Below the pieces are notes generated by a model. That model was given only the letters and a program-made list of their open reading frames with translations, was not told the origin of the DNA and searched no databases. Of a stretch of DNA of 64,000 nt, positions 13,927 through 59,256 are shown one piece after another (within the stretch, counting starts at the first letter, position 1; each line of letters begins with the position of its first letter). Position numbers and translations under genes: made by a program. Source of the DNA: Marsupella aquatica (Eukaryota; Plantae; Marchantiophyta); the NCBI GenBank assembly GCA_973895155.1, contig OZ316899.1, positions 5,397,241 through 5,461,240 on the forward strand, read 5' to 3'.

Positions 13927-15034
13927 ATAGAAGTCCGATTGTCGATATTCGATACTATTAAAATGGCATGTTGCGATGCTAGTAGTATCGGATATATGGT
14001 TTTTCAAATTTTATTTTACAAAGGCGTCCGATGTGGAGAGTATCGGAAAAAGGAGGTAAAATGTACTAGTGTGAAGGCAAGCTCAAAAATACTAGGTCCA
14101 GTTCCTCTGTTCAATCCCCTTTTGTATGTTGTGTAAGCTGCAATTTGACAGATGGCCCTATTTTGGTTGTTTTGCATCCCTTGCAGAGTCCAGCCCTCTT
14201 ATTCATTTGCCATGCTTTCATCCCAACATGCATTGACTCTTAACCTGTGCAATTTGGAATCATTGATTTCCAGCTTCTTTGCACTGCTCTGGAACATTTC
14301 ATGCAAACCAGTGTTATGTGTAATGGATAGTCCAAGGAAGTGGCAATAAAGCAATATCTGTTGTAACCTAAACTAAACCTTACCTTAAAACTGAGTTACA
14401 CTTGAGTACATTAACTCCAGGTTTGGGTTGATACCCAATGTTCCTACCCTACATCTATATAAAGAACCTACCAGAACAAGAAGCCCTAAATGATGAGTAA
14501 CAAGCCCATACTTTAGGAACTCTAGCCAAAAAATCAGAAAAACAACGAAAAAGTAAAAAAAAGTGCAAAAATTAGCACCTATTTTAGAACAAAAATATGG
14601 AGCGAACAAAATAAGACATAAACTAGCTATGTTTTGACGCCTAAAAATGACCAAATTCATCTGAAGTTACATCCCACCAATAAATGATCTCAAATACAAC
14701 ACTATTATCTACAATGGTCTCACAATTACACGAGCTGTCTCTTGAAACAACAACTAAATCACCTCCAAAAGCCATTGTCATTTAAAAACCAGAAAATAAA
14801 TTACTACAACTTAACCTGATACACATTATTGTGAAAAGAAGACAAGGAGAATAGAAATGACACCATCTAATTGAATTGAAACACAACCCACTAAGAAAAT
14901 ATTAAACTACAAATTTCTCAAGAAACTTTAACCATGAATTCATGAATAAGTGGTAAAGGCATTTTGAAAAATTGAAAATTTTCAAGTTATCTATGTTTTT
15001 CAATGGTAATGTCATAAACAATAACTACTTTTCA

Positions 15035-18000
15035 TTACTCAGATCCAGAAGTCCTCAATTCTTGAAACGAAATATCCCTAGATTTATCTCCTAGCGGGGT
15101 TCTAGCTGATCTATTCTCTTGTTCTTGCTCTTTCTCTTCTGCCAAAAATTCAGTCAATCGGATTTTGATTCGATCTACTGTCTTTTTGTATAATGTATCA
15201 GATTTTGTCAACATGAAGTTAAAAACAGTCGTGGAAGATAAATCAAGCTCTTGGTGAAACCATATTGGTTTCAAAGTTCCTTTCCCACGACCACTTTTCT
15301 TCTTTTCGTAGTTTAAGACTTCTGGTAAGTACTTGGATTTCCAAGGATCTGACCCGGTTTTTGCAGCATGCCATAAAACTTAAATCATTTTTGGAATGTT
15401 GAACTCGTCGCGCTGGTCAATTCTTTCCACCTTGGCCACCCAAAATGTTTCCGATTCTTCTCCAGCAACAGAAATATAAGTGTTGACTTCAAGATCCGAA
15501 AAGTCTCCTTCCATATTCTCCTTCTCTGCATCTATCTTTCCTTGATTCTGATAAGGACCCACGTATATATCTCTGGTAGGTCCATATACTCTCTCTTCAA
15601 TTTCCTCTTCATTGACAAGGACTCTGGGAACTTCAGCAGCAACAACAATCTCCCCTTTGGAGCGTGGCCATTGAAAAGGGAAAGTCAATGGTCTTTGATC
15701 AAGGAGCAAAGATTTATTCAATTCCCGTTGCTCTTCAAAAAACATTCTCCACCAGTTCACTTCCTCTTCTGAGAATAAAGTTTCAACTGCAAGTATTCCC
15801 TTTTGAATCTCATTTAACGAATCATCCATCTCCTTCAAAGTCATTCTTGAAGAACTAGACATATTTGGTTGAGTCCTTGTAACGTTCTTATCCCCCTTTT
15901 TGAAAAGGGGTAATCCGGGAGCACAACCCATCACCTTTTCTAGCTCCTCTTCCCTCAAAAATTTCACGCCTCCGTCAGGTTTCCAAGTTGAGTCCATGGA
16001 AAACTTCTTCCCCCATTGGGTTGGAACTTGATCTTCCAACTTGTCAAATGCAAATTTGTACTGGTGGTGGAAGGTAACATTTCGAATCCTTTCAATGACT
16101 AAAGGTGGATCTGAGAAGGCATATTGATGGAAATCATATGTTTCCTTTAAAAGAGTGATATTTGGTTGGGGTTGATATGATTCACAAATAATATCACATA
16201 GGCTTTCGTATGTGAATGCCTTAAACCTTGCTAGTCGTTTAGAAAATCGACTGAACATTTGATCTATTTGGTCGTGTGTGTGTCCAACCAACAAGAATCC
16301 TAGTTTGATTTTCCGAAAAACCTTTCTTCGAATCAACATATGAAGATAGGCAAAGAGTAAATTATTTTTATTTTCTCTACTGGTATTATCAAGTTGAAGA
16401 TAGGCAAAGAGTAAATTATTTTTATTTTCTCTACTGGTATTATCAAGTTGAAGATAGAGAACAGGCGGCAAGCCACCAGGCTTTTCTTCCCATTCGTGAA
16501 ACACCCTTTGCAGGATTGTGACTGTCAAGTTTCCATCATTATGTAATACAGGATAATTAAGAAACACTCTTGAAAATAGTGCACCATTGAAAACCAGGCA
16601 TCCGACAACGTGCATTTGGATCAAACATGTTTCGTCCACCGATTTTGGGGGCCGCGGCCAATGAGGCAACCTTGTCTTCTTCTGATCCATCCCATCAATG
16701 ACAACTCCCAAATATTTATCAGGATTTGAAAAAACATTTCTTACGATGCTTCGCGAGTTTCTCACGTTCTTTGGTTTGTTGGTCTCTATGTTTTTGTAAC
16801 ATAATTTCCCCTCGCCCTGGAAAAACAACTTGTTAGTTTCTTAAAAAAAATAGAAATTATGTGCTAAGCCATATCCTTGAAACAAAAACTTGTCAAACTT
16901 GTAAGTAACTTACTCTTTTCGGTCTCCGAGACAGCTTTGTCCTGAATTGATTTGAACTCCTCGCAATCCGCGCAAGCACTGAATCGATTGACTGGAGGAA
17001 TCTTCACATGACCAAATTCTTGATAGGATATTTTTGATGATTCATCAATCTTGGCATAGTTGGAGTCGTAGATCTTCCATACCTCCAGCTTTGAATAATT
17101 ATCCGGTAAATGTGAAACTTCTTTATTTGGCAATGTTTCAACGCGTGTCTCAAAAAATGACCTGAGCCAACTGACCAAGACTAATCTTTTAACAGATGGA
17201 GGGCGTCCAACTGGTTTAGAATATCCTAAGTCTTGGTTGTCTAATTTCAAAATTCTATTTAATCTATGATTGCCAACGCAAAATATAAGCTTGAAAGCTT
17301 TCCGACAAATACTCTTTTGACCAAACGTGTAAGATATAGTCTGCCTCCCTCCTTCATTTCCGTCTCGCTTTATAAGCCACTGCAAAGATAAAGACCGATC
17401 CTGAGATTTCTGCCTCAAAAATTTAGAACGCGCCTCACGAATTTCTTTTGGAGATAGACTTAGGAGACAATGACTCTGACAATAGTACGTACTATTTGTT
17501 TTCTTGATATCCTCCTCTTTCAACTTTGTTTCACACAAAGTGGCGTTGCTCGTACGTTTGTAACGACTAGATGCCACCGGAACATCATCATCCTCCCCAC
17601 TCTCCGAAGACTCGCTTTCATTCGATGATGAAATGGTCACCAACATTTGCTTCTGAACATGCCGAGATTCCAGACCTGCAGCCTTTGGAGATGGAGGCTC
17701 TTCCTTCACTCTATGCAACCTTGGAATACCTGGGCGTATTTCAGAAATCCCTCCATTACCGTGTAGGGACCCATTCAATATTTTCCTAGGGTCCCTCTCC
17801 ACCAGGTTGGTTACCCTGTTTGAGTTTCCGTGACTTGATCCGCTCGCTGCCCCAACACCATGACTCCTAGGTAAAACTGAGGAACGCACATTAGAATTCC
17901 TTTCTGGAATACTTTTCAATAACACTGGTCGTCTAGTTCTTCCCTCATCCCCCTATGAAATGTTTCTGACGTTGGCTTACCAAAGGTTTTACTTTTTGAC

Positions 18001-18454
18001 ATTTGCTTCAGCCGCTGAACACTTTGGAGACTGCAAAAATCTCTGTCATTTTCCCCACTTAGTGCCTTCTTCGTCTTTCCAAATCCAGTCTTCATGAATT
18101 CATGAGACCATTTCCCAAACATCCAAATAGGCATTGAACCTTCCAGATTACTCCCCAATTTTTCCTTTGTTGTTGACAAAGGAGATACAACTTGACGTCC
18201 AGGGGGACCAATACTCTCCAAGGAGTCAGAGGAGCTCCCTACCTCTCCTTACCACCGACCAATGATTTCTTCCCACTAATTGCAAGTCGTAAAGGACTAC
18301 GTTTTAACTTGCTCATAGGGGTGGGGGGTGGCATATCTAAAATAGTAGTTATTCCAGGGATATCTGGGCCAACCACTGTGCAGGGGCCATCCGACAATGA
18401 AACATCATCAGAAACTCCAACTGAATACTCATCTGATTCGTAACATGCCGCCAT
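15035..18454 (-). pseudogene. DDD-type transposase (Sola1/DUF7869-like), with intron, stop and frameshifts
   Basis: Motifs IDGMDQ, LYLQLDNTSRENKN, FLLVGHTHDQIDQMFS; upstream Cys motifs (CQSHC, ICRKAF, FSACADCEE). Spread over ORFs 18239-18454, 17916-18221, 16864-17925, 15380-16828 and 15035-15274. Confidence 0.85.
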
Positions 18455-19234
18455 TGGAAAAACTAGTGCAAATTGACAAGAAACTCAGAAAATCAGTAAA
18501 ATCTAACAAATCTTCTCAAAATAATGACCAAGAGTCATGAATAAACGAGCCTATTTATAGTTTTTCACAGATTGTTAGGACTTTTTAACTTCAAAAATAT
18601 CAAATATTCATTAAATTTACAAGCTTTTTCTCGTTAATACCCCGAAATATTCATGAATAATTGGCCCGAAAACATTGATTTATCATGATTTGGGGTAAAT
18701 TTTACTAAGTCGCGCCTGATCCGTGATTAGTATGTATAACCAAGGAACACGGGGCAGCCCATTCATTTTCACTCGATGTCATTTGGATTTCCTTTGTAAA
18801 AGAGTGAAAAACAATCTCGCTGTCCAATTTTGTGCCATTTTCAGCACTCATCGGCGACGTGTCGCGAGTTGTTGTGGTCGCGCTTCATTCCGACCCTACT
18901 TTAGGTAGTAATTTAGGCCCTGGGTGATTTCTTCACGTCACCCTCCCTCCGAACCCCATTTTGAATACCCTTCTGCATCACCGAGGTGTACAAGCAAAGA
19001 GAGAGGAGACTCCCTTCATGAATTCATGAAGGTCGGTGCGAGAGGGAGACTCCCTTCATGATTTCATGATAGGAGTCCTGGGGTGGCCGAGAGCGTTGTT
19101 AGATCCGTAAGGACACAGCTTTAGTAGCCATTTGTTGGCACATTCTTTGGTTCTGTGACACTTTGTCTTGCAGGTTGGGGTTCAAGTGGACTGATTTTGT
19201 GGTATGTTCTCAGGTTTGAAGATCAGGCAAAAAC

Positions 19235-22200
19235 ATGACAATGTCGCAGGAAGAGCTGGTGGATGACATCTTTTCGCGCCATCCTTTGACGGACTTCCAC
19301 AACTCATCCTTGACGATTTCCTTAGGGACGGAAACATGGAAGAAACCCTTCCTAATGCTGTGTGTATTTGAGGGGCTTCCATCGGGGGCATTAGGGTGGG
19401 TAAATTACGGCCGCATCGATGTATTTTGACGGGGCGACGAAGTTGTAAACATGTTGATCACAACGAAGGAAACGTCAACTTTGATTGTCGTGGATGTGGA
19501 GAGGTTTTCCAGAACGGCTGCCACCTGCTATCTCGATGAGGACATCGATAGCATCATTGAGACTATCAAGTCTCTTTCGAGTGAGGAACGTTACCACGAC
19601 TTCGCGGGAAAGATTTCCGGTTTTGTGTTCAAATTTCACGCTAGCACTTTAAAGAGTGCAATCCGAAAATCAAGAGAGATTCTCCGGAAAAGGTTGGCAG
19701 AGAAGGGGGTAAGTCGTCCACCCAAATTTGGGGCTTCCGGTGTTCCTTCTGGATCCAGGCCTAGCATTTTACCCGATGATATTTTGACCGTGGTAGCGCC
19801 TACAACCTCTCGGGAAGTAGCAGCATCTGGAGGGGGATCTCAAGTTGGCAGATCATCCCAGGGAACGGCTTTGACTGGTGGGTCGGCACAAGGTACGACT
19901 GGAACTCACACTTCTTCAAAGAAGCGACCTGCTATGACTCCTGAGCCTACCGAGCCTAGTGCTCCAAAGTCAAAAAAGAAGACTTTGGAGAAAATTCCAA
20001 CGCATTTGGAGCAAAAGGCTCAATCAATGTTAATGGATGCACGGGTATTGTACCAGGAGGAGATTCTGGGAAGATGTGGTGTTCAAGAGGAGACCGTGAT
20101 CGTTGACATTGGTCAACTTTACCCTCCAGTGAGAGAGAAGGCTGTGGGCTTTCCCATTTACCAGGTCCGACACATCCAACCATATTTCTTGACCCAATTG
20201 ACCTTGCGGATGAAGACTATAGGTGCCAGTCCACTTGCAGCTCTGTTTGTCCTCTTGGTGGATCCGAAGGAGTGTGCTACTAGGCAAGACTTTGATTTTT
20301 CAAGGAAAGCTGATTACCATTATTATGTGATTGGGGGCAACCATTCAGCCTGTGCCAAAGCAGACCTTGCTCTTCAGTTCCCTAACACCAAGGCATTTCA
20401 AAGAGTGCAATCTTGGATATTTGCTGGATTGAGTGTGCAAGAGGCAAGAAACCTGGCGTGGAGTCACAATATTGATTCTGAATTTCGACAACAGATGACG
20501 ACAATCCAGAGAGTAAATTATATTCACATGAGATTTGTGGAGAATGGATTGTCGTCCAACCAGGATTTCAAGAAAGAGTGTGCTACTGAAATCAATCTCA
20601 AGGATTGGGGTGTACGAAAGGATGCTGAGGTTCTTAATGCCAATGATAACTTATTTCAGTTGGCATTCCGACAAGATCCTGTGTGGTCATTTGTGAGGCA
20701 GATTTGTGACAAGTGGGAGATGTGTGAGATCAAAGGTCAAAAAGGAGACAAGGGCAAGAAGAAAGTCTCTAAGTCTGGAGATGCCAAATTGCCTTATGAG
20801 GACATGAAATTAACAGAGTGGAGACACATGCAGGCCTTGAAAGATCCTGATATGATTTGCCCAGTGTTATAGAGTTCTTACTAAAGAACTCTCTTTACAG
20901 GAAATGGGTCACGAATTTACTCGACACAAATTTCAGATGCAGGTGCAGAAGGCCTTCCTCACGTGTCTACACGAGGAGAGTTGGTTAGGTTGTAAAACCA
21001 AGTACCCTGAGCATTGCACAGACAATGTGCTTAAGAATTTTGTACCTGTTTTCCAGACATGGGTAAGATTCTGTCACCTTTCTTCGAGTGATTGTTTGAA
21101 TTCATTTAATATTTGGAATCCTTGTTTCTAATTGTACGGTTCCTTTTTGTAGAAAGATACCACCTCCCGGAAAAAGAAGGGAGATGAGGAAGGCAAAGAT
21201 CTCAAGTCATTCCCGGACAAATTCAATGCGCATATTGTGCAAGCGCAAAATTGGCTATCCATGAAGACTTCTAGTCGGCAAACCCAAGAGGGGGAACTTC
21301 ATCCAAATTCGTTTGAGCATCCAGAGTTTGGTGATGTGCACTATGATATTTTTACTCATGATGCTCAGCGATTACACGAGGTGGTTCCAGGTCGGGCTTA
21401 CACATTAGGTTTAGTGGATATTCCCTACGGGTTTGCATTGCCTGGATGTCTTCATGAGGACACTATTGGATGGGGAACTGAGGAGATCACAAAAATGGTC
21501 CAATCGTTCAAGGTGGCTACTACTGCAAAGTTGTGGCGTTTATCATTCACCACAGCCTTGACCAATATGAGGCCATCAAGACCGTTTTGAAAGCGGAGTG
21601 TAATGGAGGGTTCCAGAATTGTGTGTGGTAAGAAATATTTGTTTTTGAAAACAACTATTAGTTATTCATGATTTCATGAACCATGTTTCTAAGTTTAAAT
21701 GACTCCTTGACTTTTTGTGACTTTTCAGGGTTAAGGATAATGTGAAGAATGTTGGTGGGCCAAGATTGAACAGCAACTTTGAGTGCTTTACAATTGGCTT
21801 TCACAGCCAGGATGGTAAACGGTCATTGGAGCACTTCAATTTTGACACAAATGAATCAAGGAACAATGTGGTTGTATGCGCAGCTGTGACTAAGAAGCTG
21901 AAACACAACGGGGATAACAAGGCAGTGAATGTCTATCAGAAACCACGTGCATTGTTAGATTGGGAAGTGAGTCATTTTAGTAAGGTTGGAGACTGGGTTT
22001 TGGATATTTGTTCAGGATCAGGGACTGGGACAACCTCCTCCTTGGCCATGGGGAGACATTGCGTTGCCATTGAGATTGACGAGTGACAGAGCAGTGTGTT
22101 GAAAGGGAGGATTCTTAACCTTGCAGATAACATTGAAGAGGAAGACGGACAGGGGGAGACGGATGAGGAGAGTGAGGAAGACATTCCTCAGGCCGGAGAG

Positions 22201-22290
22201 GATAGCGTGGTTGACGATGCCACAATTGTTCCAGAATTGACGGTAGGGACTTCCGGGACCGAGGAAGGGGAAGTGGTCCCTTTGGATTAG
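19235..22290 (+). pseudogene. ParB/Srx-like domain fused to a beta-class N6-adenine/N4-cytosine DNA methyltransferase
   Basis: ParB-like YQVR...YYVIGGNHS...AWSHN. MTase motifs in beta order: LGLVDIPYG (IV), CVWVKDN across a splice junction, QKPRALL..FSKVGDWVLDICSGSGT..MGRHCVAIEIDE (X-I-II). Introns 21063-21152 and 21628-21728. In-frame TGA at 19427 and 22084, plus frameshifts. Confidence 0.85.
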
Positions 22291-23274
22291 ACTAGGTAAA
22301 TAGAGGGACTCGTAGCATTTGAAACCACTTGGGCTTAAGTTGGGTTATATTTTGTAAAACTTTGAGTTTGACTTAAACTCTGATCAATGAGTTTGATTTT
22401 GACTACTTTTATAAAGTGCATATTTCAAGGTTTATACAATTGTGAGAATATCATATAAGATATGCTTAGATTTTGGTGGTAAAATTCTCTTGAGTCTAGT
22501 TTGGAAAATACATACCATTTTTTTGTGGTTTTTTGGTACACATTTTTGAATATCATGAAGATTTTGAAAAGAGAAATAAGGCTTTGGACTCATCCCTTAA
22601 GGCTTCTTGTTCCAGGAGGAAATGGTAGTTATGCATATGTTGTATATGGAATCAAACACGTTATCAGCACAAGGCTCTTACATCAATTTTTTTTCAGATT
22701 CCATCAGTCATAGCATCCAAGGCTAGCAAGAATCCAATTGGTAGAAATCCCCTACATAGAATCCCTAATTGGATTATTTTTTTGCTTGAAACAAGAGATC
22801 AATCACTTCCAATCTTACCACTCTTAAACTTTTGAAGAGAAATTGAAGTTGTGGGGCTCAAATACAGCTTGTCAATTGAGGATTTGTTTTACTTTCTTTT
22901 CACAATTCCCTTATTGAGAAACTAGAAAGGGCAATTTAAGACACAAATCCATTGCACACCCAATCACGCAATTGTCACAACAAAACTTAGTCCAATCCCA
23001 TACAAATTACTTCAAATTATAGAACAATAAGAGGGAAACGGTTACCAGAGATGTTTGAGACACCACATTTCAAAGAAATTGATCACAACCAATCAAGGAG
23101 AATTTGATATATACAAAATTGATAATCAGAGAGAAGCAAGTGCAGAGATACTGCAACATTGAGCCCACTAGATAACTTCTAACTCTACACATTTACCTAA
23201 AACCTATCTCTCATTCATCCAGATTGAGGTTGCAATTTACATCAATTTAACATTAATCATGAAGCACATCCATA

Positions 23275-23550
23275 ATGACAACAAGCACTATAGAAAATCT
23301 CTTATTCCAAGCATTGAGCATTGATTGCTCAAACTATCTCTCGTGGTCCCTCGATGCAGAGGCACACCTCACCTCCAAGGATCTCCAGGACACTATACTA
23401 ATAGATAATGGCCCCACTCTGCAACAGAAGGCAAAGGCCTTAATACTAATCCGCCATCACCTAGCAGATTCACTCAAACGCCAATATATGAATGAATATA
23501 ACCCGCGTCGGCTATGGGACAAGCTCCACTCTAGATTCGATCACACCCGT
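23275..23550 (+). pseudogene. gag: Truncated Copia gag
   Basis: NYLSWSLDAEAHL..KAKALILIRHHL..LWDKLHSRFDH, very similar to the gag at 44827-45573. Confidence 0.85.
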
Positions 23551-25402
23551 ACCTCCCTTTGTACCAACCTCAAGTTTGGAAGTCGGGCCATATCTCTACA
23601 TCTACACCAGCAACAGCAGACAGCAAAATGGGCATGAAGGTTGTGACTTTGCACCACAGAAACGTACAAAGTCAAGACCAAGAAATGACAATTTTGTGCT
23701 ACGCACACACTTGGAAATCCCAAATTTCTGTCCCGCTACGAAGCTAAGAATCGAAGATGGAATGCAAAACAAAGAACCAAACGACCACAAACCTTGAAAA
23801 CCCACAAGGCATCAAACAGCAATGGAGCCTTCCTAACATGACACAAATATCTTTCTACTACAACATACATACACAAGAACAAAGACACACAAAGCAAAGC
23901 CGCTTCCACTCCCACGACTAAACATAGGACCAATTACAAAACACTTAGAAATTACAAACTTACATAAAGCTAATAGGAATGGTGACACTCTTTCCTCCTG
24001 AAGAAAGTAGGGAGGTTTTAATGAGGTTACATCCCTATATGCATAGATAATTACACAAAAACTGATAGACTAACAATCATAGGAACCATTCCAGGTTTAA
24101 TTTACTTAAGATGGATGCAACATTCACTTGCCATGTAACATCCAAGGGGGAGTGTTGTAACCTAAACTAAACCTTACCTTAAACCTGAGTTACACCTGAG
24201 TTACATTAACTCCAGGTTTGGGTTAATACCCCAAGTTCCTACCCTACATCTATATAAAGAACCTACTAGGAGGAAATGGTAGTTATGCATATGTTGTATA
24301 TGGAATCAAACAATATCAAAATATTGTCACTCTGTAAATTTGTATGTTGCATCTTATCACGAGTCCTTTTCCTAGACCACAACTGTAGAGTAGGGTTTAG
24401 GGAAAGATTAACTCTTTTCCTCTTAAACAACCAAAGTTCATTCCCATGAAGAGCTTGTGAGACCTAAAAGATTGTTCTAAAACACTTTGAGATAGTTAAG
24501 CTAACCTATCTCAGATTCTAAGCCTTTACCGACATGCTTAGGTCTGGTGAAAGGAATTTTTAATACATCCTTTGTCAGGTAGCGTGACATTTGTATCGTC
24601 TACAATGTAATAATTGTTCAACATCACAAATCATACCCCACACTTTACTCATCCAATACTTTATGTACATTGGGTTGTTGCTGAGGCGGTTGGTGGTATA
24701 ACCGCCTTATGTGTCCTAACCTTAGGTAGACTTATCCTAGGGGTTATAGCACTCCCCCTTGGATGCAGCTTTTATAGAGGTAAAGTTGCAGACATTTAAA
24801 GTCTACCTATGGAAAATTAAGTTATGTTCTCTCCTATTGTGTGGTAGGGTATCTTGTGTTAAAGGTGGGGTGTAACCTCATTAAAACCTCCTCTCCTTTC
24901 TTGTGGGAGGAAAGAGTATTACCACCCCTTCCTTTATTTTCCATAGAGAAATTTAAACTATGTAAGAGAATAATATGTTGTGAGTTGTTTTATGGTATTC
25001 TAAAGTATTTTGAAGTTGCTAACTCTAATTGTGTTATCTATAAAAGAACTGGACAGTTTGTGGTCGTTTGATAGATTAGAGTATTCAGTAGTGTGTGAAT
25101 ACGGTCTTGTGGAGATTAGGTTGCCACTTCCAGTCGCTCTGTGTTTGAGCTGTAAGCTTGGTAATGTTTGAGCGATCGGTATATGCGATTGTGGAGTGGG
25201 AAGATAGTGTCGGGGCGGTCGGGCGGTATGTGTGCGATGTCAATCGACTTTCGTTGCAGCATCGGGTGGAAGTCGTTCTGATGTCCGTCTGCCGATTGTG
25301 ATTCTATCTGCATTGAAGTCTTGCTCGATCGGTTTTGACTCGCTTCTGTTCATGGTCGCAGTGAAGTTCATGCTCCCCCTCAATCTGCTGGTTCTTTTGT
25401 TG

Positions 25403-30526: not shown

Positions 30527-33500
30527 CTTCCCTCTCCTGCTCTTCGGGAATGATACAACGGGTTGTGTTTCAGGAGCTCGCAAAGCAGTGGATCTAATCA
30601 CTCGATGACTATACATAGATCCTAAAAATGAACACTCAGATGTTTGCGAAGGAACGACCTCTCTCTGTCCGTTTCCACTAAAGCATTGAGAGGAGGAGAA
30701 GGCAAGGTCCATTGCTCGCACAGGGGCGGAAAAAGTGTGACGACCACCGCGCTCTTTCTGTACCGCGAACAACAATAATCCATCACACAGCTGCGATCAT
30801 ACCGTACTTCACATGGGAAATAAAAAGAATCCAAAGCACAGAGCATGAGATATACGCCAACAAAACTGAACTCCTTGCCTGGATATATGACATCTGTCGT
30901 TACTTTATTCGATAAGACCAAAGAGGATCAATGTATTGAGGAACACGCAACCTGTAGTTACTGTTGAATATGACCGTTGGAAGGAAAACTTGAGAATATA
31001 TCGAAAGTATTTTTACTCACCAAATAGTAGCGCCGGGCGCTAGTAATTCCCTATGCCCAAAATCTTCAATTTTTACATCAGTTGAGGATTCAATATATAG
31101 CCATAAGAGGCGGTAATACGACATTATTTTCCCCAAAACCCATTTTTCGCATATTTCTGATACAAAAGAAAACTAGCGTCGGGCGCTAGTTTTAAACAAA
31201 GCTATTTAAACCTTTTGTAGGCTCCTAATTTGTAGTTTACCTTTGTAGACATTCATAATATGAATTAAATCAATATTAGCGCCCGACGCTAAACATCAAG
31301 TGTCTCGTTTTGGAATTAGTTTTTTGTCATTAGTTTTTGTTAGCACCAGGCGTTAGACATAAATTGACTTCAGATGGACCTCTACTTTTGGATTGTTTTT
31401 TATAGCGCCTGGCGCTATTGAACATATGACATTTCGAGAACAAAAAGGTTCTTCCTAAATGACGTTGATCGTAAATGATGTTGATCGTAAATGATGTTGA
31501 TATAACGACAAAATACATTTATGGTGTAAGAGGATTGTCTTATTATAACGGCTTTTGGGAACTGTTAGCCAAGGTCAATAACAGTCCTCGCCCGCAGAAT
31601 TTTGATTCATAATTTTCCTGTGCTCATTTGTTTCCAAGGCTTCTGTGATGTCTCAGTCAATCGTAGTTACCCGTATGTCCACCGGTGACATTGTTTCCAT
31701 TCCAATGTCTGTGGCCAAAAGGTAGAGGCAAGTAAGTGAGGTTTATGTTTGTGGAAGGTTTGATTTGTGCATGAATGACATAGAGGCAATCGTTTAGGAG
31801 GGAACGGAAGCCAATGACTTCAAATCTGTTGCACTTTTGATGTCAATGATTGGGTGAGATTCTGGCACCTTAATACTGGGTTGTGCTACTCCATTGTCGT
31901 TTAGGAACCAAATCAAGGAGATCACCAATCCCCACAGAGGGATCCGGTGGATGTAGTTACTCTTTCCGATAGTGATGATAAGGAGCCACCAAGGATCCCC
32001 CTTGTGGAGCCTTTGGTGCCTGACGTGGTCTTGGTCAAAGAGGAGATGACATCGTTGCAATCCCACATTGTATATCGGAGAAGTGCAATGGACGCGCTGC
32101 TCAAGTCAACTGGGTCCATCAAACTTTTGAGGTTCATTGCGGCTGGAAACTTTTGGCATGAACAAGTACCTTGTTTGCCTCCGAAGTACAATGGTAACAT
32201 AGTGTTTGAATTGCCTCCATCATCAGGAATTCTTTCAAAAGGATCCCGTCTACGGGACATGGACCGAACCAAGGATTGCTACATCTGGACAAGAATATTT
32301 CCTACCACTGCAAACGTGCAGCCCAAGAAATATTGGGAATTTGGTAAAATTACTTGTACTGGATTTATTGAGTGCAGGAATAAAACTTGTGACTACTTCC
32401 GTCAAAAGAAGAGGAGGAATGCCAAGCCTGGGCTGGTACCCCGAAACTTGGAGGCTCTCACCGTGTTGGATCATTCATTGAGCAGGGTGGAGTTGTTTGT
32501 CATTATTGCCAACAGATCCCTTTTTGTGTAGAGGCATGCTCTGCAAGACTATTTTATATGTATCCTCAAGTTCTGCTTGACTCAGATACCTGTAGTCACA
32601 TGTCTTGCCTTGCAATTCATATGGGTACCCACAACCATCCTTGTCGCAAGATATTTTCTCAGAGTGCGGAAAAGGTAGTTGAAGATGTCATAAAAAAGAA
32701 ATTGGAAGGTAATCCAACTTGGACGCATGCGGGGATTAAAAATGTAGCGACAGGATCTTTTGTACAGTCTTTGTGTGAGAGCCTGGGTGAGATTGAAGAT
32801 ATTGAAGAAACAGAAAATTTTCAGTCTCTAATGGTAGTTTCTACTCCACAGAAGTTTGCATCTCTTTTCAAGAGTGTTAGGCAGGACCAGAAAGGCCGTG
32901 GAGAGTTGGATTTTCTTGTTCGATATCAAAAGAATATCAACATGCCTTTTCTACAGAGGTACATCCTTCCAGGTCAAGGATCTCAAGAAGACAGACCTCA
33001 CATATTTAAGATGACTTCAAAAGGCCATGGGTCTGGGGTGGATATTTTGCGGCAAATGCAACCTGGAGGGAGTCTTGAAGGTGCCTGGGTAAGCTTCGAT
33101 GTCATGAAACAAATGACCCAGGATTGGGTGACTTTCAGCGCACACATTTACGATCACAATTACCGCGCATTTGTACAATATTTACTTGCAAGCTAAAAGT
33201 TGAAGACACAGCGTCCTTCAAGAAGGCTTGGAGATTAATGATTGCGGTTTCCAAAGAGAATGGGTTAGATAATCCAACGATTCATGGCTTTATGGTAGAC
33301 AATGCCCAAGCCGGATGGTTAGCAGTCCAAAATGTTTTTTTAGGGCACCCAAACCCTGAACGGGAGAGGACTGACGCTTTTCATTTTTACCAAGCTTTTC
33401 ATCGCCATTCTGTTGAAGGAGTGTTGGAAGAGAAGCAGGCGGAACATCGAATGCTATGGGATAAATTACAGAACGCACCGACATTTGTGGAGGCTTACCG

Positions 33501-33828
33501 ACTTTCAAGAGAGATTGACCTATGGTGGCAGTTGGGTAACTGCTTCCCTGGAAAGCTCCGAATGCTTCAGAGTTGGATATCGTGGTTGGAGAGAGTGGGG
33601 AAATTTTATTTGCTTGGTGAGTATTAGCACCTGGCGCTAGTAATATGCAAGTCAGTTTCCTTTGTAGAAGTACAATTTTCAGATGACATTCCTCAACATT
33701 CCATCCAAAGAATCCAAATAATGTAATTGATTCTCAAATATTGACCTGTTTATTTTGATAAACATGTGATTACACAATAATATTAATGGTTTTGTTGAAA
33801 TTTTCTGCTTAGTGCCTGACGCTAGTAT

Positions 33829-36800
33829 TGTAGTATCACACCAGGGACATAAATTAACATTTAAGATCCAAAACTCGGTATTCCTTCCCATGGAAGAACA
33901 TGTAAGGAATGATTTTCTATGATTTAGCACTTATGAATGAGTAAGGTAACAAAACACAAAGGTGAGCCTTTTACTATGGTTGCTCAGCAAGGCATGGTTT
34001 TAAATATTTGCTTAACATTGAAAATAAAATTAACAAATGGAATCAATTAACAAAACATAATGAAAATCTTGAGGTATGGTGAGAGAGTCTGGAAAATACC
34101 AAGGTAACTTCTCAATATCACTTAATTTTAGATGATTTAAGGTGAGGAATCCACAAGGACATTTATGGACTGGAATGCTTTACTAGGATGGTTTATTAAA
34201 GTGCCGTCAACACATCTCAACCTTTCCTTCCAAGGTACTAAGTTAGGATTAACAACCAATCATTTCACCATCCAATCGATACTTTGAGTCACGAATATCA
34301 AGCACCATCATCAACAACTTAAAGTCACAGGTAATTGGGTGATAACGTTCTTTGCACCTCGTGCACAAGCATGTTATGTCAAAAACATATGCATCAAGAA
34401 CTCAAGAATGTATAGCCTTCACCAATTAAGGAATCTATCTCCACACATTTAAAAGATTCATCAATCACAAAGTTTTACTTCTCTGGTCTGAAATCTCAAC
34501 ATTCAAACACAAGGAAGGGGAAGAAATCCTCTGTATTAAGTACTCGTCAACAACATAGAGTGCTTGCTACAAATGGAGGTAACAGAGTTGCAAACCTGCA
34601 ACTGAGCGCTCATGAAATTTCTTCACACTAAAAGTGACAGAAGTTCAACTACATATAGGGTAGCAGGAACTAAAGGGAAATAAGATAATGAAAGGACATG
34701 CCCTTTTGTATGTTAAGGGTCATGGGCAAAAGTAAAGTAACAAAATTATACTACAGGAGTACCTAAGGTTCAGTGGAATGCTCCTGGAATGAAAAACTAA
34801 TCAAAAATGATTCCTAGTGTAAACTGGAGTAAAAGTGTCATTGGACTTTTGTGATAAAACTAACAAATAGAAACTTTTTCTGAATTTTAATTTCTAACAT
34901 AAAGGTCAGAATGAGGTGAAACGTTTTTAGGTGGAAGAATTACATATATGCTTCATGCTGGCAAAATTTCAGATTTTTTTGAGGTTTAATAAAATCGGTG
35001 AAAAGTGCTTTTGGATATAAAAAACCCTAAAGTGTCGGAAGCACCGTTGCGCCTTTGCGCTTTGGAATAGTAGCACCGTTGCGCCTTTGCGCACTCACGC
35101 TACTGCAAAACTAAAAATTCTATAACTTCTAAACTAAATGTCGGTTTTGGCTGATACTTTCAGGGGAGGGTCTGCTACATAAGAGCTACCTTCTGAAAGA
35201 GTATGAGACTTTTCTAAATACTTTAAATATTTAACTAAAATTATAGAGATTAGTTGATCTTGACTCGAAGGATGGAGTAGGTCAATCTTCTTGAAGCAGT
35301 GATGTCTGGTCCGGTGGTTGGAAATTTCTGAATGTCTCGGTTCGAATCACCTCTCGATGGAAATCCATAACCTGCGTATCATGTCGAGCAAATGGAAGAG
35401 ATTTGATTTATCGTTCATCATCTAGAATGGGAAGTAGTCTCCTGTGAAACATAGTGTTCACCTTGCTAGCTTGCATATAGATGCCGACCAGATCATAACT
35501 ACAACAAGTGGTATGATAGTTGCATGGAAACTTGTTGATGAAGGTGTCAGAGTCTTGGGCAAGTGACAGAAGTGGAGTGACACTAGGTAATAGTTCCCGC
35601 CACTTCAGGGTGTAATCAGCCAACCGCTGGGAAGTAATGTTGTTCCAGATTCTTTGACTCTCAGCAGCTGGTGTGATAAATTGTTGAACAACAAAAGGTT
35701 CCTCTGGTAGGACACCATGGTCGACCTGATATCGTTTGTTGGTTTGTCTCAAAAAGTTGATGATGAATTCCAAGACATAGGCAGGTAAGTTCCCAAAATA
35801 TGCCAAAGTCAGATCTCCATTCTCCAGTACAATGTGTCCACCAGGATCATGACAGCAAGAATAGGGCAAAAATATTTAGCCTCTGTCCAGATCTCATCCA
35901 TCTCTGCTATCTCTAGGCGGGTGACATTCTTCAGATCAAGCTTCAGGATATAGAGACATTCAACTCTCTTCTTATGATAGTACTACCAAAACTCTAAAAT
36001 GGGAGGAGTTCTAAGGTCTGAAACTCTGACAAACTCAGCAAATTGTGTAATATTCTCCTGAGGGGTTTTAGGGTCAATATGGAGTGTAGGAATGAAATTG
36101 ACCTGGCAGGATTTATCTTGACCTGGGGAAGGGTGTCAGGATAAGAAATGGCAAGATGTTCACCTGTAGGGGTGATCTCAGGTTCTGGAGAACTAGGATA
36201 GAGCTGGTCTGGTTGATTTGAAGGACTGTAAGGAGAGGTGGGTGAATGACTAGAAGGAGGGGAAGAATAGTAAATGGGAGAGCCAGATGCTGAGGTATGA
36301 TAGCGGACGGCATAATAGACTTGCTTGGTGTTGCATCCAAAACTTTGTGTAAGCCTTGGACTAAATCCTCACAATATTCTCAATGATGATCTCGGGTAAG
36401 TAAAGCTGATGTCTTATGCAGAAGATCATCTAAGACATCAATTAAGTGTCTCTCATCACACTCCAGCATGTAAGTCATTTTATTGACAAAAGTAGGATAG
36501 TGTTCAGCAGAGTGACCTGGGGAAGCAGATAGTGTCTGTTGAAGCTCTAACCTTTGTGATGTATCATTCTCCTCCATCGGTTCAGCTTCAGTAATATTTG
36601 TAACCCTAATATTGGAGGTGGGTCGAAATAGCTCCATCACCTCGGGATAGAACTGAGTAGGACCTTGGGTTGGAGAGTATGGAGAGTCAGGACTACTAGG
36701 TTCAAGCAGAGTTACAGAGGCTGCTCTTAACCTCTCAACAGGGTCAACTATCTCCTCAGGTTCACAGATCAATAAGTTGCTTAGCTTATCAATAATTTGC

Positions 36801-38320
36801 TGTTAGATTCTACTCTCAGTTCATCAGCCGTTGGTTTGCTAAACATGAAGGGTCTCTTACGTGATCTCATAGAAGGGGTCAAGCTATCTACAAATAAATT
36901 CTGAGTTAGGACTGTAGGTGATCAAAGAGTAATAGGGACAGATATGTCAACTGCAGGTACAGGAGGTGGGGGAACCTCTGGTTTGGATGTATACTCATCG
37001 AGATTGGAATTGAGGGGGGTGTAAAGTCTTCTATCCTGATTGAGATCTTCAAAAGGGGATAGAGGGTTATCAGGAATTGGTGAAGAGGTACTTCTGGGTT
37101 CCACGAGTGGTTCTCTATGGGTAAGAGGGGTAACCTCTGAACAAATAGGTGGGGGAACCTCTAGTTGAACTTCATCAGCATCTTCTCCTTCAGTATCCTC
37201 GTTTCCTGATTCACTAAGATCAAATTCATCAAGTAGTCTAATCCGCTCCTCTTGTTCACCTGGAAGTAAGCAATTCCCATGAAAATACAACTGGCAAAGA
37301 TAAGCAGGGAGAGTAGTGAACTCATCCATTTTCACCTTCTTTACTTGAGATAAAATAACATGTCTTAGCAACAAGGCCCAATTTATCTCAGCAACTCCCT
37401 TCCAACTTGCCACAATAGTATTGGCAAGTGACACAGGTATCATATGTGGTTGAATGGGATGGAGAATTGGAATCAAAAACTCTAAAATGATTTTAAGAGT
37501 ATAATTGGTGCACTGGTCCATTTTCCATCCATGGCGAGCGTTTTGAGTTCCAGAAAAATAAGGTCTCACAATCTCTCCTTGTCGTGAGTGTAAGCTGTTG
37601 CCTTCGGTGGGACAGTCAAAAGCATCAGCAACAAATTGCAGAGTCCAGAATTCGGGATTTGCCCGAGCAGTTCCCACCATACCAACTTCGATTTGTGCCC
37701 CATCACTGAAATCCTTCAAAAAACTCAATGAAGTTACGGACCAAGGCAGAGTGAGCAATTTACTCAGGTGCATGACCGCCAGTGCTTCCTTCAAAATGTG
37801 CAAGATTCTTTTCATCGTAGGGTATGCGCGGGGACGGCCTTAGGTAAAGGAACTCCTCTCACAGTCATCTCTCCCCCTTTGTCGACCATAGTAATAAGAG
37901 ACAAGGTGTTATCGCCAACTATCGATCCGAAGAGATCTATGCCAAATGATCCGCCGTTGCGCTTTTGCTCTGTTGCGCCCTTACGCCTTTGCTCCAAAAT
38001 GTTGTTGCACGATTGCGCTATTGCGCTTTTCCCCCAAAACGCCGTTGCGCTTTTATGCCAAAACGCTCTTTGTAGCGCACGGTCAAACTTGGCAGCACCA
38101 ATCTTCCTTTCGTGCTTCGAGGACATCGATAGTAGTTTCTTCTGGCTTGTCTCACCCCTACCTAATTACTCAGGGTATTATCCATTAATCTACCTAACTT
38201 AAGTCTTAACCTTACTTATATCTAAAAGTAGATTAATTGGCTACGTTTAATCTATTTCTAACAACAAAAATTTTAAAATTTTTCATTATTTCTAAGTTTC
38301 TAATTTAGACAGCTATTACA
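33829..38320 (-). mobile_element. 4492-bp solo LTR (copy A) containing a long ORF
   Basis: Ends TGTAGTA...TATTACA, 5-bp TSD AGTAT (33824-28 and 38321-25), no gag/pol and no terminal direct repeats. Homologous along its length to 48472-63195. Confidence 0.88.
35250..37889 (-). pseudogene. LTR-encoded protein, frameshifted
   Basis: ORFs 36922-37815, 36380-36772 and 35408-35869 are collinear with 48666-49250, 60238-61707 and 61811-62470. Confidence 0.8.
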
Positions 38321-40196
38321 AGTATCTTTTGCGGATGCTTACTAGTGTTTATACTTTGTCGTTCCAGGACAAAAGTGCTAAAGAAGGCGCTAGGATTCCT
38401 AACTATATAGGATCAGAGTCAGTTCACGCAGGAATGAAAGCATGGGTAATGAAAAAAAAGTTGGGCTCTTTGAGGCATGTGAAATGGATCAGAATCGAGC
38501 TATATCTCAGGTTGCAGCATATACCGCATATCGGAAAGGATTGAGTAGAGGAAGAGGTCCAACAATATGGGAACTGGCTTTCCGTTCAGCTGATCAGGCA
38601 GGTTCCCCAAAGCTGTTCGAGGATGCGATGAACATGCTCCTCTCCAATGCTGTTGAGTTTGACTTGGAGAGAAGCATTCCTCTCAACAGAGATGTTCTAA
38701 CAAAGTCTGTCAAGAGGAAAGGACCTGCAACTAGGATTATCTCGCCACAAGACTCCCACCGGCATGATAAAGTCCTTATCACATTGCCGAATACCAGATC
38801 ACTCAAGCAAAAAATCTGCACCACACAATGTTTTCTTCCGTGTTGGAAGAAAAACCTGATGACATTTCCATTGTCAATCTGTCAGGAAGTGATGATTCGA
38901 GGGATGCAGAATGTGATGATTTCAGGACACCGCAGGGACAACATCAATCACGTTCAACACAATACCCACAAAGCGCTCCCACTGTACTTCAGTAGACATT
39001 GCTCGAATCTCCAGTTCTTGAAACAGAGGTCATGCAGGGTGCATGGCATCTGTGTCGGACATCAAAATTTGGGGCGGGTCCACAGTGCAACACATCATTT
39101 GGTGGTAGTTCCGAGAGAGATGAGTGTCGAAATAGAGTGAAGAAAGTTGGGTTCCCCTCATCAAACGGTGTGATCGACATTGTTGTCAAAGGACAATGCA
39201 TGTTCAGGGGGGAATCCATAGCCGAAATGATATGGTTCTGCCCAAACAACACATGTTATCGAAGCCATCCCCGCCGTGGTGTAGTGTACTTGCCCTCCTT
39301 TCCTGATGTTCTTCCTGTTATAAAAGGAACAAATGTTTTGGAAGCTGAGATGAAGTATCTTGTTGACCAGGGAGTACCTATAGCCCGAGGAAGAGACGGT
39401 CCTCTACCTCCACCATCACTTTTTGAGCTTCAATCAACGTCAACTTATTTCCAGAGAGAGTCAATCTTCTAGAACTTACTGTTCGTCTCCAGAGTTGGAA
39501 TGGAAAGAACACGGTTCCTTGATCAACCTTGACCCATGGTCACATGAAGAGGATTGAATCTACACAAAAAGAGACCATGTCTGTCCAGGATAGTGGGATG
39601 TTTCTATTGGGAACTCATGGGGGAAGCAATTCAAAGTACAAACACATGAGAATCTAAGGACGCCGAATAGTTACTTTGTGCAGATTTGTATTTTCCCGAC
39701 TTGTTCGTGTGAGGATTTCTATCGTCGACATTCTTGTAGACAGCCATATATGCCTTGCAAACATTTGTACTGGGTTTTCCAGACCGTTTCAAACTAGACA
39801 TTGAGGAATCTACTTTGACCAGCCAACCAATTCTCACAGTTGGAGAAGTCCAACTGATCTTGGAGAGGGAAAATGCTCATGGTTTATAGAGAAGGATGTA
39901 GTTGTCCTATACTCAAAACGGTTATATTGGTTTTTGTCTTATTACAACAGTATAGTTTTATGTTAGCGCCTGGCGCTGGGATGGAGTCTTCCTTATTATC
40001 ATTTACTTCATTGTAATCTTATCAATGGAAATGATATTTTAAGTTTTTTTTCCCACATTGTGCATTCATTCAATGTCATTTTTTAAATGTGTTGCTTGTT
40101 TCCATTTTAGCTAGCGCCAGGCACTAGCCCATCGTTTGTGGTCTTTCAAATTGTCCAAAGTTTTCATTCGTGGTTTTCTGCCTTATTGTCTGCCTA

Positions 40197-41454
40197 TCAA
40201 GAACTATAATACATAGTTGCGCCACTTTTTAGAGTGGTCGTCATTCAAATTTGCAGGGCACAAAAATTAAAAAATCTGGTCAAAGGTAAGCAATAAAGCC
40301 AAAATGTGAATTGAGTTTAGTGTGAGTCAAAAAAAGTTGCACCAGTGCCCAAGACAAGCAAGAATAATCACACGAGGCACACAAAAAAAGAAGTGAAAAA
40401 CTTTAACACAATGCACAAGGATCAATGCACAAGGATCAAGGAGTACACATCCATGCAAGTAAATATTGTACATATTCACATGCAAATTTGTATTGTACAT
40501 ATTCATTGTACATATTTCAATATTGTGTGCATCATAATTTTGTATAATATTGGTAAGATTCCATAAAAGTAATTTAATTGCTAATAACATTTTAGTCACT
40601 AGATCAATAAAAAAATTATTCTCCCAATATTTGTGGTGATTTTTATAGTCATTTGCAGTGTCATTTTCAATGCCAGAAAAACAAAAGTAATAAGGCCCAA
40701 AGACATAGTGAAAGGCATGGCATGGGTGTTGATGGCAAGGTCTTAGGCGAGGGGCACACTCGCAATGTAGGGTAGCCCCTCGATCTCACATGGGTGGGGA
40801 AGGGGGCCGGTGAACGAGTGGAGTGATGGTGAATGTGAAAAAGAGAAGACAAAAATAGGAAAAGGGGAAAAGGGCAAGGTTAAGGTTTGAAAGGAACAAT
40901 CTTTTTTCTTAACACATCTTTTGTGCAACGCACGGGTATTTTCCTGAACGATGTCTTGGCCGACACAACATCTTTTTTCTCAACAACATCTTGGGCGACA
41001 TGACAATTGTTTTTTAACTACATCTTGGCCAACACGACATCTTTTTTCTCAATGACTTCTTGGCCAAGACGACAACTTTTTCACAACAACCTCTTGGCTG
41101 ACACGATATCTTTCTTTCTCAACGATTTCTTTTCTCTCAATGAATGAGACCTTTAGGGCGACTCGACATAATTTCTCTCCACGACCTCTTGGCCGACATA
41201 TCTTTTTTTCTCAATGACATCTTGGCCAACATGACTTCTTTCTCTCAACAACCTCTTGGGCGACACGACATCTTTTCTCTCAACGACCTCTTGGGCGACA
41301 ACATTTTTTCTCTCCAAGACCTCTTGGCCAACACATCTTTTCTCTCCACGACCTCTTGGCTGACATGACATCATTTTTTGTCAACGACATCTTGGCCGAC
41401 ACGACATCTTGGCCGACACGACTTCTTTTGTGCAACGCACAGGTATTGAGCTAG
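40197..41454 (+). mobile_element. Probable non-autonomous Helitron
   Basis: 3' GTGCAACGCAC hairpin followed by CTAG|T at 41451-55. The 5' A|TC start at 40197 is a guess. Confidence 0.55.
40945..41425. repeat. ~33-bp tandem array (CTTGGCCGACACGACATCTTTTTTCTCAACGAC-like)
   Basis: Roughly 14 degenerate units. Confidence 0.85.
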
Positions 41455-41815
41455 TAAAATTATATTACTTATGGTGGGACCTACCATGTCAATGTTTTTT
41501 CCTATGGCATTCACTGGTAAATGTTTGTGTGTGTGATTTTGGGGACACTATTTTCCAGAAGTATGTTGGTGATTCCGGACTCACTTATCATTAGACAACA
41601 ATTGTTGCCATGTTAGTTGGTTCTAAGCTCTAGAATATAAATGAAGCGCAATGAATATTGCTTATTTTCAGATGTATCTGGTTTGAAGTAATGAAGTATT
41701 ATCCTGTTCCAATGACTTACTTTTCTTGGTAACAGCAACATATTCCTCATAACAACAACATTTTTTCTGTTACCAGAATTCTTGTTTTCCTGTTTCCTGT
41801 CTTGGTGGCTATACC

Positions 41816-59240: not shown

Positions 59241-59256
59241 TTTAAGGAGGGGATTA
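59241..59256 (+). promoter_or_regulatory. Polypurine tract, with a second copy near 57017
   Basis: TTTAAGGAGGGGAT abuts the 3' LTR and recurs just after the pol stop. Confidence 0.85.

Follow-up and report, generated by a model that had tools for sequence, protein, structure and literature searches.

Accessory genes with ParB-like and methylase-related domains on two DNA-transposon lineages of a liverwort-like land plant

Within a 64,000-nucleotide stretch of Marsupella aquatica DNA (hereafter the window), two different DNA transposons each carry an accessory, or cargo, gene beside their transposase, which raises the question of whether the two genes encode the same kind of protein and what such a protein might do for the element that carries it. 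A preliminary description of the window had read both as a fusion of a ParB-like domain with an amino-methyltransferase, shared by a Sola-like element and a MULE family and directed at the element itself. We examined the parts of this proposal through structure prediction, profile comparison and alignment to related loci.

A decayed Sola-like DNA transposon of 8137 bp occupies positions 14475–22611. Its terminal inverted repeats (TIRs; 14475–14506 and 22580–22611) are perfect over 11 nt and 78% identical over 40 nt, a 4-bp target-site duplication (TSD), CCAG, flanks it at 14471–14474 and 22612–22615, and an uninterrupted paralogue of the empty site at 24153–24312 is 94–100% identical to 14359–14474 plus 22614–22658. 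The Sola superfamily is said, in the account of Bao, Jurka and Kapitonov from 2009, to combine a 4-bp TSD with short TIRs, and both are present here. The minus strand at 15125–18221 holds transposase remnants that match Pfam DUF7869 (PF25273; E = 8e-55) and are 58% identical to the transposase of the related locus L003, a comparison in which the N-terminal third was not recovered in the window. We regard this protein as a putative Sola DDE transposase and call the element Sola-like, the tie between the Pfam model and Sola being itself putative.

Divergent from this transposase, as previously described, a spliced gene runs on the plus strand from 19235 to 22290. Alignment to the intact L003 open reading frames (ORFs) gives exons at about 19235–19426, 19451–20869, 20871–21065, 21160–21628 and 21730–22290, with stops at 19427–19429 and 22087–22089 and frameshifts at 20870 and near 21530; this copy is a pseudogene for a ParB-like domain followed by a beta-class DNA methylase. 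The ParB-like core (20033–20869, plus strand) comprises an N domain and then a helical DNA-binding part, and was modelled with AF2 at a pLDDT of 77. In a Foldseek search with this model, the 12 best matches are without exception ParB, Noc or KorB proteins (218–245 aligned columns, E 1e-4 to 3e-3), led by 6sdk, 7ng0, 7ol9, 7bm8 and 7bnr (E 1e-4 to 8e-4) and with the KorB chains 8qa9 and 8qa8 among the matches; proteins of these three kinds extend to E 8e-3, and sulfiredoxin comes next. The ParB/Srx fold proposed earlier is thereby placed with ParB/Noc/KorB; in ParB proper, a helix-turn-helix domain comes after the alpha/beta N domain.

In ParB, the arginine-rich box II (GERRxR) is needed for CTP binding. 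The equivalent box of the Sola-type cargo, YYVIGGNHS, lies at 20321–20368; its G-G-N-H-S is invariant among members, and the GERRxR arginines are absent. CTP-clamp behaviour of the Sola-type protein is therefore doubtful, and the CTP-dependent sliding once envisaged for it finds no footing in a box that reads GGNHS.

The methylase part of the same gene carries motif IV, L-V-D-I-P-Y-G-F, at 21411–21434 and motif I, SGSGTG, at 21997–22029, the latter within a plus-strand exon (21742–22086) that matches PF01555 with E = 1.4e-8 and 35.4 bits against a gathering score of 26.7 bits. The Sola-type members in the window, L003, L004, L007 and L008 all exceed this threshold (35–43 bits), and D-(I/V)-P-Y is kept in the latter four. 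In all Sola-type members D-(I/V)-P-Y precedes (C/F)-S-G-S-G, that is, a catalytic motif IV of the (D/N/S)-P-P-(Y/F/W) type, its middle proline replaced, lies N-terminal to the F-x-G-x-G motif, and the best PDB matches of the domain are beta-class methylases. The predicted N6A/N4C methylase is thus recovered by family score and by both motifs. Together, the modelled fold and the family match support the reading of the Sola-type cargo as a true fusion of a ParB fold with a beta-class methylase.

The second element proved harder to classify. Its transposase (31947–33627, plus strand) is 42–50% identical to that of L001; its segment at 32073–33585 has a homologue in a minus-strand fragment at 1–740, cut by the window start, which belongs to a further copy, copy 1. 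Similarity to the DUF7869 transposase was not detected. MULE/Mutator elements are marked by long TIRs and an 8–11-bp TSD; TIRs were not found around the window copy or L001, where the copies are decayed, nor was a TSD found for the second element. Pfam models, MULE included, gave no match to the transposase (E up to 0.1 for the window pieces and up to 5 for the intact L001 ORFs), and the MULE label given to this element is therefore not established. Read by eye, the protein has a D...D...FH layout, its sole MULE resemblance.

Two pseudogenes of a second cargo type accompany these transposases. Copy 2 (26685–30463, minus strand), traced by tblastn with the intact L009 exons, comprises a GNH-box exon, a long middle exon, methylase-like exons and a conserved C-terminal exon; it has at least 10 in-frame stops and has lost the motif I segment. 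Copy 1 (2319–5310, plus strand) retains a motif I-like I-V-L-D-W-T-V-C-D-G-S-S at 4746–4781. The two copies are, as proposed, mutually homologous (35–46% amino-acid identity over many exons), each beside a homologous transposase, but the ParB-box exon expected in both was not detected in copy 1. All three cargo copies in the window contain in-frame stops and frameshifts, and therefore none of them acts now.

For this second type, the amino-methyltransferase assignment holds as a remnant of the fold and falters at catalysis. PF01555 matches four members, always at motif I (E 6e-5, 1.6e-3, 0.028 and 0.066); the motif I segment alone matches, and the best score, 23.5 bits, stays under the gathering score. 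The family profile finds the adenine methylases 5hfj/5hek in the PDB with E 0.004. The catalytic (D/N/S)PP(Y/F/W) motif was not found in the second cargo, where the sole candidate is x-L-P-(T/S/N)-G (family consensus F-I-x-L-P-T-G; G-F-I-Y-L-P-S-G-L in copy 2, 27955–27981, minus strand). This candidate, proposed as a degenerate counterpart of motif IV at a presumed equivalent position, shows no conservation of the acidic/polar first residue or of the aromatic one. At the N-terminal end, copy 2 has the box F-S-V-F-D-G-N-H (30089–30121, minus strand), in register with the Sola-type GGNHS; the family form, D-G-N-H-R, holds one arginine and does not match GERRxR. The AF2 model of the second type's N-terminal exon is poor (pLDDT 45), which makes a fold search on it meaningless.

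Whether the two cargo types are related at all must be judged from profiles, since BLAST and tblastx between them found no similarity. Two short islands align in the same order, the GNH box and methylase motif I. The former gives an hhalign E of 0.0016 over 53 columns (probability 16%) and, in HMM searches of about 785 sequences, reciprocal best hits with E values of 9.5e-4 and 7e-3; for the latter, hhalign of the second type against the methylase exon of the Sola type returns E 4e-4 (probability 35%). A first hhalign over the whole methylase domain was not significant, a profile built from the Sola-type exon that carries motif IV did not recover the second type, and relatedness of the middle ~400 residues was not detected. 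The shared domain order described earlier thus survives for the GNH box followed by motif I, and not for the "helical middle". The second type could instead be an unrelated protein with an independent methylase remnant and a chance GNH match, the two genes not being homologous as wholes; the missing BLAST similarity, the unrelated middle, the low hhalign probabilities and the poor second-type model all lean that way. We nevertheless consider this unlikely: two independent islands match in register and in the same order, the best HMM hits run in both directions, the two types agree in gene position and in their palindrome arrays (see below), and weak matches to DUF1015 (E 0.05–0.08), presumably a family of the ParB clan, fall over the DGNHR box in two second-type members.

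Calypogeia fissa and metagenome contigs contain intact relatives of these genes, with long intact ORFs in L001, L003, L008 and L009. In the window and in L001, L002, L003 and L007, the cargo gene and the transposase are divergently oriented and inverted-repeat arrays lie close by; the position of the gene relative to the transposase is therefore kept in other genomes, in line with the earlier view that these genes are transposon-borne. Among relatives, pS is saturated near 0.8 and pN is 0.16–0.5, a pattern that supports past purifying selection on the cargo genes. The abundant stops in all three window copies would also suit host-gene fragments captured in the manner of Pack-MULEs and drifting neutrally. 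That origin, which the preliminary description had named as a possible refutation, is already contradicted and extremely improbable, given the intact ORFs, the constant architecture across species, the constant transposase linkage and amino-acid differences far fewer than the saturated synonymous ones. As to source, the methylase domain finds its best non-eukaryotic matches in phage proteins (24–29% identity) that carry a ParB-like annotation and align to it through their C-terminal half, and tblastn with the ParB part found no match in phages. The nearest prokaryotic relatives thus include phage ParB–methylase fusions, as had been anticipated.

Every element carries 5–20 copies of its own family-specific palindrome of 14–26 bp. 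Five copies of TTCATGAATTCATGAA, against 0.08 expected, all lie within the Sola-like element (14931, 18091, 19015, 19055 and 21665; span 14931–21680), three of them between the divergent genes and one in the intron that separates the methylase exons, and the core recurs in L008, upstream of the cargo. For TAGCGNCNGNCGCTA the window holds 13 copies against 0.01 expected; ten span 26183–33824 (26183, 26585, 27661, 29892, 31028, 31174, 31277, 31403, 33625 and 33810), while the remaining three (10910, 39964 and 40112) lie outside the second element, beside another gene family. Where an intron separates the methylase exons, the palindrome within it keeps its position and differs in sequence (window 21665 and L003 7847; 27661 and 4368). 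The densest clusters sit between the divergently oriented genes, a short way upstream of where the cargo starts (window 18091–19070 and 31028–31417; L003 4863–5201; L004 677–1003), and others lie near element ends (14931; L001 2236–2429 and 12598–12691). These arrays lend correlative support to the suggestion that the cargo protein recognises its own element.

The explanation that we favour, with moderate confidence, is that these are accessory genes that came from prokaryotes or phages, each joining a ParB-type DNA-binding module to a beta-class amino-methylase module, which travel on at least two DNA-transposon lineages in liverwort-like genomes and target their own element through the palindromes. 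The ParB-like N domain and helix-turn-helix part would dimerise on the element-specific 14–26-bp sites, scattered over the divergent promoter region, introns and element ends, and would thereby bring the C-terminal domain onto the element's own DNA. The Sola-type domain, since it keeps D-(I/V)-P-Y and SGSG, probably deposits 6mA or 4mC there; the second type, in which the catalytic tetrad is apparently lost and the G-x-G loop remains, probably has a non-catalytic role as scaffold, SAM binder or DNA binder. Binding and methylation could result in self-marking, self-regulation or anti-silencing; the marking or shielding against 5mC put forward earlier is likewise conjectural.

The palindromes could, alternatively, serve the transposases as subterminal or internal binding repeats, or be small hairpin insertions, in either case unconnected with the cargo protein. 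Subterminal repeats are common in many DNA transposons, some of the copies do lie near element ends, and TAGCGNCNGNCGCTA also occurs beside a different gene family. We find this distinctly unlikely, because it needs two unrelated transposases with internal arrays placed alike in cargo introns, and the palindrome feature recurs in red algal elements whose accessory gene is ParB-like; what the two elements have in common is the ParB-like cargo. A KorB-like autoregulator is a somewhat unlikely alternative. Palindrome binding would then serve mainly to regulate the promoters of the divergent transposase and cargo genes, through repression or timing of expression, the methylase being secondary or a switch on the same sites. 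KorB chains among the fold matches and the dense clusters upstream of the cargo start fit such a role, yet many palindromes lie in introns or near element ends, far from promoters, and the conserved modifying domain is left unexplained. KorB of plasmid RK2 and chromosomal ParB/Noc share with the Sola-type protein the fold of the N domain and DNA-binding part, as well as numerous palindromic sites dispersed over the encoding replicon; the Sola-type protein differs in its GGNHS box, without phosphate-binding arginines, and in its fused methylase, and neither a ParA partner nor a C-terminal dimerisation domain was seen for it.

A more tentative extension of self-targeting, possible though doubtful, is that ParB-like proteins and element-wide palindromes form a co-evolving self-recognition system that moved between transposase lineages and entered land plants, the methylase of the second lineage being dead and its protein perhaps a non-enzymatic shield or anti-silencer. 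If true, such a shield coating its own element would amount to a ParB-based counterpart of VANC. VANC of Arabidopsis VANDAL transposons causes 5mC loss and is not a methylase. Like the cargo proteins here, it is encoded by a DNA transposon as an accessory protein and is proposed to act on its own element via short repeated motifs; the analogy is functional only, and no relation in sequence or fold is expected.

The module and the self-recognition hypothesis have already been published for Sola1 of Ectocarpus and for transposons of red and green algae; the present members come from a land-plant lineage and include a methylase variant that may be inactive. The features of the published algal class (location within a DNA transposon, orientation divergent from the transposase, inverted-repeat arrays nearby) are all found here. 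Ectocarpus Sola1, likened to our locus by its published description only, has its gene inside a Sola-type transposon, encoded on the other strand from the transposase, and a similar proposed self-binding, self-modifying role, but spans 21.5 kb against 8 kb in the present, liverwort-like land plant. In red algal Plavaka, PAG2 joins PF01555 to SET and PAG3 a ParB-like domain to a 2OG oxygenase; these accessory genes move between transposon superfamilies, with inverted-repeat arrays adjoining the gene (bioRxiv 10.1101/2025.02.11.637652). By description, the Plavaka set resembles the present cargo in that a ParB-like module is linked to a nucleic-acid-modifying enzyme. The methylase and the ParB-like domain sit there in separate proteins with other partners, whereas here they are fused, and the palindromes here, unlike those of Plavaka, also fill introns and ends. 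Phage and prophage fusions of a ParB-CTPase fold with PF01555 (PMC12704722, PMC4738411) have the same domain order as the transposon proteins; they are short (about 430 aa) and intron-less, whereas the transposon proteins contain long inserts together with a lysine-rich linker and an acidic tail.

The window is repeat-rich and eukaryotic, with a GC content of about 41%, and its transposon genes find their best protein matches in entries of the liverwort Calypogeia fissa annotated as "unnamed protein product" (47-62% identity), together with metagenome and Logan contigs. These matches point to a bryophyte, probably also a liverwort, as the source, and no part of the window resembles human sequence. 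Self-comparison and repeat finding place the exact limits of the Sola-like element, marked by terminal inverted repeats, at 14475-22611. It has CCAG on either side as a 4-bp target duplication, and an uninterrupted second copy of its flanks, continuous across the insertion point, is present at 24153-24312. We therefore find an element of 8137 bp with a 4-bp target duplication, which agrees with the description of Sola. The transposase remnants on its minus strand (15125-18221) give a strong Pfam match to DUF7869, although the equivalence of DUF7869 with Sola is putative. An exact 54-bp tandem duplication (16341-16448) lies within the transposase region, and a MITE-like unit of about 880 bp (24011-24891) with 25-nt terminal inverted repeats (96%) encloses the empty-site paralogue of the insertion site.

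Divergent from this transposase is the spliced Sola-type cargo gene (19235-22290, plus strand); spliced cargo genes were searched one exon at a time. Pfam returned no match for its large exon (19451-20869), and no ParB model matched any Sola-type exon at E values up to 10. Protein searches found clear relatives of the large exon, in which the segments around Y-Y-V-I-G-G-N-H-S and A-R-N-L-A-W-x-H-N-I-D-S-E-F-R form an invariant core. Every top structural match of the AlphaFold model of residues 195-473 (pLDDT 77) is a chain of ParB, Noc or KorB, at E 1.2e-4 to 8e-3 with 218-245 columns aligned, and sulfiredoxin comes next. A different orientation of the two sub-domains keeps the TM-scores low, at 0.3-0.46; despite this, the predicted ParB-type fold is a consistent assignment down the match list. 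The Sola-type box reads G-G-N-H-S where ParB has the CTP-binding arginines of GERRxR, and CTP-clamp behavior is therefore not assumed for this protein. A tblastn search of the ParB part against phages gave no match.

The 3' exons of the same gene encode L-V-D-I-P-Y-G-F (21411-21434) and V-L-D-I-C-S-G-S-G-T-G (21997-22029), so that motif IV precedes motif I, the order of the beta-class amino-methylases. PF01555 scores above threshold in the window copy as well as at four further loci, and the nearest solved structures are beta-class methylases. Sequence-profile searches of the PDB with three of the family alignments (A2, A4 and A5) gave no relevant match. Among the nearest phage matches are proteins annotated as ParB-like, the match being to their C-terminal half. 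The target may be adenine N6 or cytosine N4. Compared with the intact ORFs of a Sola-type relative (L003), the window copy carries an in-frame stop (19427-19429), frameshifts at 20870 and near 21530, and a further stop (22087-22089); it is a pseudogene.

A second type of cargo gene is represented by two window copies, at about 2319-5310 (plus strand) and 26685-30463 (minus strand), whose proteins are 35-46% identical to one another. Homologous transposases adjoin them, at 1-740 (minus strand) and 32073-33585 (plus strand), respectively. Both cargo copies are heavily broken: copy 2 contains at least 10 stops and copy 1 is without the first exon. The same cargo and transposase pair, again divergent and with long intact ORFs, occurs in a Calypogeia fissa locus (L001), and an ENA contig (L009) holds an intact cargo gene. 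A word-index search with the second-type gene model P0032 returned Calypogeia paralogues only. The preliminary description had called this element a MULE, a label taken from motif layout judged solely by eye. We do not retain it: the transposase matched no Pfam family, MULE models included, no terminal inverted repeats or target duplications were found in the window copy or in L001, and the transposase has no similarity to the DUF7869 transposase. Consequently, we treat it as unclassified and DDE-like. The ENA contig was also considered as evidence of a third, hAT-type partner and was rejected as such, its DUF659 ORF being truncated and lying past the last palindrome. These ORFs (L009 6035-6946, minus strand), carrying a domain of hAT-type transposases, lie just beyond the cargo-bearing element and are probably a neighboring fragment, since the room is too small for a full transposase.

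How the two cargo types relate is less direct. Compared by tblastx they show no similarity, and comparison of their profiles yields a limited match in two places, with the order conserved. The first is the N-terminal exon, where the second type has the motifs h-h-L-L-V-D-D, F-x-V-x-D-G-N-H-R and R-V-x-A-x-F. Compared by hhalign, this exon and the Sola-type core align in register; E was initially 0.011 and fell to 0.0016 once L009 was included. Similarly, when about 785 sequences were searched, the Sola-type HMM found the L009 N-terminal exon as its best foreign match (E 9.5e-4), and in the reverse direction the second-type N-terminal HMM scored best against Sola-type proteins (E 7e-3 and weaker), each match falling on the same box. 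Two second-type members have weak matches over the D-G-N-H-R box to DUF1015, presumably a member of the ParB clan; no ParB model matched any second-type exon in Pfam at E values up to 10. The AF2 model of the N-terminal exon is poor (pLDDT 45), and a Foldseek search with such a model was uninformative. A metagenome scan found no further relatives of this exon.

The second place is motif I of the methylase. The PF01555 matches of second-type models P0026, P0032 and P0039 and of the L009 gene stay below threshold (E 6e-5 to 0.066) and always fall on this motif; in the PDB, a small second-type family profile retrieves only adenine methylases (5hfj/5hek, E 0.004; CcrM, E 1.5). With the Sola-type methylase exon, hhalign finds an in-register alignment of 41 columns at E 4e-4; when the methylase alignments were compared in full (A4 against A6), E was 0.57. 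The middle 400 residues have nothing in common with the Sola-type profile (hhalign E 0.16, with the aligned columns outside the ParB core), and an HMM built from the Sola-type motif IV exon did not match the second type. The sole candidate for motif IV there, F-I-x-L-P-(T/S/N)-G, is without both key residues; the C-terminal domain, if it has a methylase fold, is very likely inactive. The earlier claim of a shared ParB-like and methylase cargo holds broadly for the Sola type, but these two profile islands support it only in part for the second. Both cargos probably share this two-domain ancestry.

Every element contains many copies of a short palindrome specific to its own family. The window Sola-like element has five copies of TTCATGAATTCATGAA, all within the element (0.08 expected), and the same core recurs upstream of the cargo in the related locus L008. 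Other Sola-type relatives carry TCAAGCCNGCTTGA (13 copies in L003, nine in L007) or CGATACNNNGTATCG (nine copies in L004, spaced 40 bp apart upstream of its cargo). In the window second element, TAGCGNCNGNCGCTA occurs 10 times, with 13 copies in the whole window (0.01 expected); the Calypogeia locus has 20 copies of a 22-26-bp palindrome and the ENA contig 20 of an 18-bp one. The sites are densest in the intergenic region between the divergent genes and also occur throughout introns and near the ends. In both the window Sola-type gene and L003 a site lies in the intron that separates the two methylase exons, although their palindromes differ, and likewise in the two window second-type copies. 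Since palindromes are common to two unrelated transposases and the ParB-like cargo is shared, we favor the cargo protein as the putative binder. The three TAGCGNCNGNCGCTA copies outside the second element (10910, 39964 and 40112) lie beside another gene family, at 11050-12255 (minus strand) and 38620-39760 (plus strand), with about 50% protein identity and no Pfam match; the first site adjoins the former member and the other two the latter. In the introns of L001 and L009 palindromes are so frequent that six-frame translation yields recurring peptides such as E-L-A-S-N-K and I-T-N-D-V-V-S-N, some of which gene callers took into ORFs.

Neutral drift of host-gene fragments can be ruled out as an explanation of these families, since pN between family members is far below saturated pS: 0.16-0.34 against 0.66-0.86 for Sola-type pairs, and 0.35-0.50 against 0.73-1.0 for second-type pairs. 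The cargo proteins were therefore kept by selection while the families diverged.

Systems of this kind have already been described in algae. In a 2025 study of Ectocarpus transposons, Sola1-1_Ec32 carries a gene encoded on the opposite strand from its transposase. A 2025 Bostrychia preprint (bioRxiv 10.1101/2025.02.11.637652) reports accessory genes combining ParB-like with 2OG-oxygenase domains and PF01555 with SET, notes arrays of inverted repeats next to the ParB-like gene, and finds that accessory genes have moved between Plavaka, Zisupton, Fanzor-encoding and Mutator elements. Iyer and colleagues described chlorophyte and chytrid proteins, of phage origin, in which ParB-HTH is joined to a Dam-like methylase (PMC4738411), and according to a 2025 survey the phage ParB fold is frequently fused to PF01555 (PMC12704722). 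A literature search for such genes in liverworts found nothing. What looks new is the land-plant lineage, the partner transposase, unclassified and of a different type, with a cargo that probably lost catalysis, and the family-specific palindromes with their intron positions kept. If the model of a self-marking module is true, eukaryotic transposons would carry their own sequence-specific epigenetic writer, derived from phage or plasmid ParB-methylase fusions. Our data carry the published algal cases into a bryophyte lineage and place the module next to two unrelated transposases within one genome. They also supply two testable details, namely a palindrome per family in the same introns of diverged copies and a lineage that seems to retain the methylase fold without the catalytic motif. 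Binding, methylation and nucleotide-binding assays could draw on the intact Calypogeia fissa copies.

The window contains further repeats. Two 24-nt tandem-repeat arrays (12625-12811 and 13636-13929), inverted to each other, lie about 1 kb apart, and a Copia-type gag fragment (23275-23637) matches Retrotran_gag_2 below threshold (E 8.6e-5). On the right side of the second transposase, inverted copies of other repeat families are nested, at 34555-37446 and 60241-63182 (87%) and at 37454-38321 and 48471-49313 (85%). A pair of 988-bp direct repeats (49316-50302 and 59252-60239), which share 99.1% identity at a distance of about 9.9 kb, probably represents the LTRs of a young retrotransposon.
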